Positions 46,258 through 46,720 of a stretch of 64,000 nt of DNA are shown here, piece after piece. Within the stretch, counting starts at the first letter, position 1, and the number at the start of each line of letters is the position of its first letter. The notes under the pieces were generated by a model. It saw only the letters and a program-made list of their open reading frames with translations. It made no database searches and was not told where the DNA came from. The stretch lies in sequence record PP777464.1; one strand, written 5' to 3'. A program made the translations under genes and the position numbers.

Positions 46258-46720
46258 ATGGCATTTAACCAGCAGTTTAACCCAGCGAAGATTACTAACT
46301 CCAAACAGGCTCAAGGTATCTTCCCTATAAAAAATATACAAAAGTATAAAAGTAATAACCAACCTATATACCGTAGTTCTTGGGAAAAGGATATCATGAT
46401 ATCTTTAGACAACAACCCTGCGGTTATAGAGTGGAGTGTAGAGCCATTTAGTATTCCTTACGTGAATCCAGTTGATAATGCAGTTCATCAGTACTGGCCT
46501 GATTTTTATGTACTTTATATTGGTGCAGATGGTAAGCAACATGCTCAAGTACTGGAAGTTAAACCGTACAAACAATGTCACATGGAAATGGCTAAATCCA
46601 AGAAAGACAAAATCACCGTTGCGATTAACCAATCAAAATGGGCATATGCAATGGAATTTTGCAAAAATAACCGGATTGGAATTTAAAATCATTACAGAAA
46701 GGAATCTATATAAAAAATGA
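46258..46720 (+). CDS. head completion nuclease (T4 gp4-like), split by a +1 shift at CGG 46672
   Basis: YRSSWE, WSVE...[26 protein letters not shown]; conserved tail GLEFKIITE is in the +1 frame, whose TGA overlaps the next ATG. Confidence 0.88.

Follow-up and report, generated by a model that had tools for sequence, protein, structure and literature searches.

A gp4-like head-completion nuclease gene split between two reading frames in Asteriusvirus-type jumbo coliphages: a putative +1 ribosomal frameshift at a rare codon

Corrective +1 frameshifting at single-nucleotide inserts has been described in mitochondrial genes, among them nad3 of birds and turtles and several genes of glass sponges, where it takes place at extremely rare codons and has persisted for a very long time (PMC5009743). 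The genes concerned are essential and intact apart from a single frame change, no classical slippery run is found at the site, and the unshifted product is presumably useless. The rare-codon model for forward shifts has been summarised in PRFect (PMC10885494). In bacteria, the gene prfB coding for release factor 2 needs an obligatory +1 shift to give a functional protein; the arrangement, conserved across many genomes, comprises a slow frame-0 codon, an in-frame stop, a P-site codon that re-pairs and an upstream Shine-Dalgarno (SD)-like stimulator, and serves autoregulation. The eukaryotic retroelement Ty3 shifts by +1 without re-pairing in the P site, at a rare A-site codon with no obvious slippery tetramer and with a known downstream stimulator. 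Phages recode their tail-assembly chaperones by a -1 shift (lambda G/GT) at a slippery heptamer, which yields two functional products at a set ratio, is conserved across phages and is often missed by annotation.

The stretch of DNA analysed here (hereafter the window) comprises 64,000 nt of the record PP777464.1 with a G+C content of 36% and no N. Its region 45900-47300 shows 100% identity to Escherichia phage fEgEco12 (374.7 kb), 99% identity to nine further coliphages and about 84% identity to the group of 121Q and PBECO4, genus Asteriusvirus. By sequence similarity, the window is assigned to an Asteriusvirus-type jumbo coliphage. The gene under study, coding for a gp4-like head-completion nuclease whose frame changes once close to the 3′ end, is preceded by two tail tube genes, the second of which abuts its start, and is followed by a gene for a 185-aa protein and then by virion proteins (Table 1). 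The annotated gene order of fEgEco12, 121Q and Ecwhy_1 is the same as in the window, and the order around the gp4-like gene is also kept in more distant Rak2-like jumbo phages, in which the reading frame is intact.

A first-pass annotation of the window had described a frame-0 open reading frame (ORF) ending after 142 aa, a conserved family C-terminus lying in the +1 frame and a TGA of this tail overlapping the ATG of the next gene. The frame-0 end and the overlap, in which the ATG of the 185-aa gene shares its last two bases with the TGA, were both read from the sequence as described. In Hallingskeid and SE_PL the same four-base ATGA overlap is annotated between the stop of a continuous nuclease gene and the start of the next one; EJP2 has the ATGA in its sequence too, although the annotated start of the following CDS lies further downstream. 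Such four-base stop/start overlaps are common in the window, with eight of them among the ORFs of at least 100 aa, in agreement with the first-pass annotation, and translational coupling is the rule in this gene block. As for the names given to neighbouring genes, the 185-aa product is labelled "terminase small subunit" in fEgEco12 and "hypothetical" in the other records, without Pfam support. A 181-aa protein encoded further downstream carries the PHROG and GenBank label "Hsp70 heat shock protein" with no Pfam match; it is far too short for Hsp70, and the name was likely inherited wrongly.

Table 1 Features of the window referred to in the text; positions are those of the 64,000-nt window.
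Feature	Position	Strand	Length	Basis or annotation
gp4-like head-completion (TnsA-fold, PD-(D/E)xK) nuclease gene with one frame change near the 3′ end	46258..46720	+		Matches to PF08722, phrog_218 and P0004
Frame-0 ORF of the gp4-like gene	46258-46686	+	142 aa	As annotated in GenBank
TGA closing the +1-frame tail of the gp4-like gene	46718-46720	+	tail of 15 aa	Conserved family C-terminus
Tail tube protein gene	45163..46257	+	364 aa	phrog_13438 (2.2e-225); named tail tube protein in fEgEco12 and 121Q
Further tail tube gene	44375-45151			Upstream of the gene at 45163..46257
Downstream neighbour (ATG at 46717)	46717..47274	+	185 aa	phrog_16202, a family without known function
ORF with a deaminase-like zinc motif	7077-7445	+	122 aa	
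ORF labelled Hsp70	47839-48384	+	181 aa	PHROG and GenBank label
Four-base stop/start overlaps (examples)	704/707, 7077/7080, 18981/18984, 19891/19894, 21981/21984, 26714/26717, 29690/29693, 56421/56424			

The frame-0 product matches the Pfam family PF08722 (TnsA-like endonuclease N-terminal) with an E-value of 8.6e-17 and a score of 61.9 bits, the cut-off being 26.5 bits, over profile positions 1-78 of 85, and the head closure family phrog_218 with 1.2e-39 over positions 2-131 of 148. Both matches are cut short at the C-terminal end, with the rest located in the +1 frame. P0004 (153 aa), the closest intact relative in the protein collection, covers PF08722 positions 1-85 of 85. When the two pieces were compared with P0004 separately and pairwise, the frame-0 piece aligned with residues 1-140 at 76% identity (E 4e-83) and the +1 piece with residues 134-153 at 80% identity (pairwise E 5e-9), its 15-aa tail matching the C-terminus of intact relatives as the first-pass annotation had stated. 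Together the pieces leave nothing of P0004 missing, so the gene has one frame change and no other defect. The complete nuclease domain including the last β-strand is thus not found in one frame and requires both to be complete. The 25-aa +1 piece by itself was too short for HMM scans and gave no match, nor did a PDB sequence search with the frame-0 product give any.

The columns of the catalytic motif, E62, D82, E100 and K102 in P0004 numbering, are invariant in an alignment of 47 sequences and are all present in the frame-0 product. There is one gp4-like place per genome and no second copy was found. From these comparisons the gene is taken to encode the phage's single head-completion nuclease of the T4 gp4 type, with a predicted nuclease activity. 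The likeness to T4 gp4 and the TnsA N-terminal domain consists of the profile matches, the invariant catalytic-motif residues and the TnsA fold of the intact relative; in T4 gp4 and all other relatives seen the domain lies in one frame, whereas here it occupies two. A relative with a continuous frame, CBB_208, has been reported to match T4 gp4 with 34% identity and 1e-21 (PMC5259590).

In PD-(D/E)xK nucleases the strand following the second helix belongs to the conserved αβββαβ core. AlphaFold2 was run with the 47-sequence alignment on P0004, a natural intact relative with 76% identity, and not on the window's own protein. In the resulting model (pLDDT 88.7, pTM 0.80) the tail forms the final strand (residues 141-145) and a short helix following the long helix 115-137. 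Its best PDB matches are the TnsA structures 1f1z_A and 1t0f (prob 1.0, TMq 0.54-0.57), and the model has the restriction-endonuclease-like (TnsA) fold. As the catalytic-motif residues of the alignment are all located in the frame-0 part and the last strand in the tail, the 142-aa product should possess the active-site residues but an incomplete fold. According to the model, the tail has a structural role in the nuclease.

The frame change is identical in 21 of 21 clade sequences examined, 15 of them distinct, with nucleotide identities of 82-100%. The isolates read were fEgEco12, 121Q, Ecwhy_1, A4, Turkey5, ph0011, UE-S1, PBECO4, SD-1_S14, SD-2_S15 and CMSTMSU, and the assemblies were eleven further contigs (SRA, ENA, NCBI) encoding the truncated proteins P0002 or P0003; isolates as well as metagenomes are represented, with many countries of origin. 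In the collection of independent assemblies P0002 is indexed in 226 blocks and P0003 in 74. The tblastn match extends through the last residues specific to frame 0 in 35 phage records and stops short of them in all more distant ones. The first-pass annotation had proposed comparing the lengths of orthologs (about 142 versus 153 aa), and the comparison separates the two sets: clade members have an ORF of 142 aa, or of 151 aa if the frame-0 stop is missing, and none with a continuous frame was seen among the sequences examined, while all relatives whose protein identity is about 77% or less encode 148-158 aa in a single continuous frame (Hallingskeid 150, EJP2 152, SE_PL 156, XbC2 153, GAP32 152 and CBB 152 aa). 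The same holds for P0004-P0047 except P0014, which stems from the deletion-bearing SD-1_S14 record, and P0035 with its longer N-terminus. The tail motif stands at the C-terminal end in nearly all of the more than 40 intact relatives.

Since all clade members are split and all outgroups continuous, the split is a single derived event fixed in the clade and not an artefact. Single-base frame changes are a common class of error, and the low-quality CMSTMSU record shows an additional difference in A-run length nearby; the first-pass annotation had allowed for a homopolymer error. This caveat is refuted by the presence of the same frame change in all 21 sequences, obtained in different laboratories, on different platforms and from metagenomes, at 82-100% identity, and by the occurrence of the ORF in hundreds of assembly blocks. 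A sequencing error in this genome is ruled out by the distribution over many independent genomes, and we give a sequencing or assembly artefact confined to this one genome next to no probability. In the GenBank records of the fEgEco12/121Q clade (more than 30 public genomes) only the truncated 142-aa ORF or a wrongly extended 151-aa ORF is annotated, and none of the database records annotates a frameshift in this nuclease gene. In the literature on Asteriusvirus, 121Q and PBECO4 we found no report of a frameshift in this gene or genus, and the nuclease protein is not mentioned in the text of the paper on phAPEC6 virion mass spectrometry.

Three records within the clade are doubtful. SD-1_S14 (L014; Salmonella phage SD-1_S14) and SD-2_S15 (L013) are identical to PBECO4 over 1.2 kb, with 0-1 mismatches, apart from deletions in the gp4-like gene, one of 66 nt (with 1 nt more upstream) and one of 12 nt; these are in-frame and remove catalytic-motif residues. 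Both genomes are 26-38 kb shorter than that of PBECO4, and the deletions are probably assembly dropouts. If the two were real viable phages, the nuclease gene would be dispensable. In CMSTMSU (L017, UNVERIFIED_ORG) the A-run difference lies at the tail end, the annotated protein has only 96 aa and the region is found at two places in the record, which looks like a low-quality assembly.

Selection on the two frames was read from the same 21 clade sequences. In the 45-nt tail they form seven haplotypes with six variable sites, five of them third positions and one a first position. In the +1 frame every one of these changes is synonymous and all 15 residues stay the same; in frame 0 they would alter six residues. 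Only 26 of the 135 possible single substitutions in the tail (19%) are synonymous in +1, which gives the observed six of six a probability of about 5e-5. Upstream, across the last 110 codons, 85 of the 116 variable sites fall on third positions of frame 0 and 26 residues vary; 32% of the nucleotide columns of a 379-nt block are variable in the clade. With the body varying in frame 0 and the tail in +1, the selected frame changes from 0 to +1 where homology predicts. In the A4 lineage (L011 401-856) the frame-0 stop has even been lost via a change that is silent in +1, with the +1 tail intact, which indicates that the frame-0 ending is not under constraint; the 151-aa protein annotated there in GenBank (cluster P0001) has a frame-0 extension that bears no relation to the family tail. 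The cluster P0001 is named an E. coli protein by NCBI, which reflects phage contigs deposited as bacterial ones. The substitution pattern argues that the tail is translated, as part of the fold of this protein family, and the need for the +1 frame to obtain the conserved C-terminus, put forward in the first-pass annotation, is supported by a tail selected in +1 and a split fixed in a deep clade.

The same pattern bears on the suggestion that the 142-aa frame-0 protein is functional as a tolerated truncation, the tail being conserved owing to some other constraint such as expression signals of the downstream gene. All catalytic-motif residues do lie in the frame-0 part, GenBank annotates this ORF only, and an SD-like AGGA for the next gene is situated within the tail. 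A constraint at the RNA level, on the other hand, does not lead one to expect six of six variable sites to be synonymous in one particular frame and all 15 residues to be unchanged; moreover, the tail represents the final strand of a conserved fold and the last 7 Pfam positions, and is kept by nearly all of the intact relatives. We consider this explanation unlikely.

A decaying pseudogene, whose function has been lost or taken over and whose tail has not yet diverged, would account for the frame break and for the further deletions in SD-1_S14 and SD-2_S15. The clade is deep for such a process, judging by the share of variable columns and by the 85 third-position changes in 110 codons, and both parts of the gene remain open and under purifying selection, each in its own frame. 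No second gp4-like place exists in these genomes, and the nuclease activity of gp4 is needed for the morphogenesis of T4, in which the protein is required for joining heads to tails (Benler 2020, as cited in PMC7824862). The first-pass annotation had called a dead pseudogene unlikely, and with both parts open and selected and the split fixed in the clade its probability now seems slight indeed.

The overlap of the two frames is distinguished by its codon content. CGG is the rarest sense codon of the window, with four occurrences among the 18,818 codons of 77 ORFs and none among the 13,111 codons of the 40 ORFs of at least 150 aa. The frame-0 ORF holds exactly one CGG, read as arginine and located in the overlap, and exactly one CGG codon in the gene was found in all 19 clade sequences checked. 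Glycine codons of the type read in +1 are about 50 times as frequent as CGG, and the junction is spanned by a 15-nt stretch, the longest without variation in the 379-nt block. The other three CGG codons of the window are found in two small ORFs. The 122-aa ORF with a deaminase-like zinc motif carries two of the window's four in-frame CGG codons and has atypical codon usage; it may have been acquired recently.

Other signals were sought at the junction. No SD-like stimulator is present upstream (a 4-nt match occurs in only 1 of 19 sequences), downstream RNA structure does not exceed that of shuffled sequence (z 0.0 and -1.0), and a search of Rfam gave no match. No tRNA genes were found in the window. 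In the region 292000-299000 of fEgEco12 (L019 874-3141) ARAGORN detected five tRNAs, namely Ser-GCT, Met-CAT, Asn-GTT and two Thr-TGT, all with normal 7-nt anticodon loops; six tRNAs are reported in the fEgEco12 genome paper. None of the five cluster tRNAs is specific for arginine, and a tRNA-Asn is among them. A quadruplet-decoding or otherwise odd phage tRNA was rejected as a candidate, with none in the window and ordinary tRNAs in the cluster.

No homopolymer is conserved near the junction either: the runs measure 3-5 nt and vary between lineages, which bears on correction at the transcript level, where slippage of the RNA polymerase or editing would provide some mRNAs with a continuous frame. 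Both the window and the 121Q-type genomes possess five consecutive A close to the junction, but this run is broken (3-4 nt) in four lineages with the same split and tail. Productive transcriptional slippage, besides, normally needs longer runs (Atkins 2016, PMC5009743). Slippage at the A-run was rejected on account of its lack of conservation, and correction of the transcript in general appears very improbable.

The tail could also be initiated alone, at an internal +1 ATG about 10 codons upstream, and act as a non-covalent partner of the 142-aa protein. Such an ATG precedes the tail in all haplotypes read, and selection on the tail requires only its translation. There is no convincing SD in front of this ATG, though; the ATG itself results from conserved frame-0 residues and is likewise found in the intact relative SE_PL. 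The +1 residues between it and the tail are not conserved, and it would be unusual for a peptide of about 25 aa to provide a core strand in trans. A split protein of this kind is therefore, in our estimation, highly unlikely.

The reading we favour is that the two frames are probably joined by a +1 ribosomal frameshift at a slow codon, conserved and either compensatory or programmed. The host tRNA for CGG is a minor species. The common ancestor of the 121Q/PBECO4/fEgEco12 clade would have acquired one frame change a few codons before the end of the gene. Ribosomes reading straight on would produce the 142-aa protein, with its catalytic residues complete and its last β-strand lacking, while some ribosomes would pause in the overlap at the frame-0 CGG arginine codon, dependent on the minor host tRNA, and resume in +1 to give a full-length protein of about 152 aa, the stop of which overlaps the start of the next gene. 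What the overlap displays is a +1 coding stretch downstream that overlaps the frame-0 end, a conserved arrangement, purifying selection and a rare frame-0 codon; a re-pairing slippery P-site codon and an SD-like or structural stimulator, as known from prfB and antizyme, were not found there. Since two other ORFs of the window use CGG in frame, the codon alone does not force a shift, and its efficiency may be low. A low yield may be sufficient, or even of advantage, where a non-specific DNase is required in small quantity (T4 gp4: Benler 2020, as cited in PMC7824862). The joining of the frames on the ribosome, its efficiency and a regulatory use of the shift, e.g. keeping a non-specific DNase scarce, are what we infer from these comparisons. 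A more far-reaching version, rather doubtful in our view, would be an obligatory regulated recoding switch that couples the output of the non-specific DNase, and perhaps the translation of the downstream gene, to the minor host arginine tRNA late in infection, with the phage tRNA-Asn possibly serving as a shift-prone P-site tRNA; this would be a Ty3- or mitochondrial-type mechanism, independent of re-pairing, on E. coli ribosomes. The probability left beyond the ribosomal shift and the alternatives discussed here is assigned to unknowns.

Among the described systems, the gene behaves most like the mitochondrial genes with corrective +1 frameshifting (PMC5009743), and by analogy this is the closest class. 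It shares with them an essential gene that is intact apart from one change of frame, long persistence within a clade, an extremely rare frame-0 codon without a classical slippery run and an unshifted product that is presumably useless; the differences are that the present case concerns a phage translated on E. coli ribosomes with a full tRNA set, that the change lies a few codons from the end of the gene, and that the shift is a predicted one. With prfB it has in common a +1 shift that would be obligatory for a functional protein, a slow frame-0 codon and conservation across many genomes, whereas the in-frame stop, the re-pairing P-site codon, the upstream stimulator and the autoregulation of prfB were not found in the nuclease gene, which in the A4 lineage has lost even the downstream frame-0 stop. 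The likeness to the Ty3-type shift lies in a rare A-site codon that would drive the shift without an obvious slippery tetramer; nothing comparable to the downstream stimulator of that retroelement was detected at the nuclease overlap. As in the lambda G/GT case, a morphogenesis gene would be recoded in a way that is conserved across phages and overlooked by annotation, but the direction is +1 instead of -1, and the complete fold is confined to the shifted product.

The records of the clade miss the conserved C-terminal strand of the nuclease and should be given a recoding annotation; gene callers that learn from these records take over the error. Mitochondria, in which such work is difficult, supply most of the known long-lived compensatory +1 shifts at very rare codons, and a natural case on E. 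coli ribosomes that relies on neither a slippery run nor a stimulator would be an accessible example. For the phages themselves, the arrangement suggests that the efficiency of frameshifting may set the amount of an essential but non-specific DNase.
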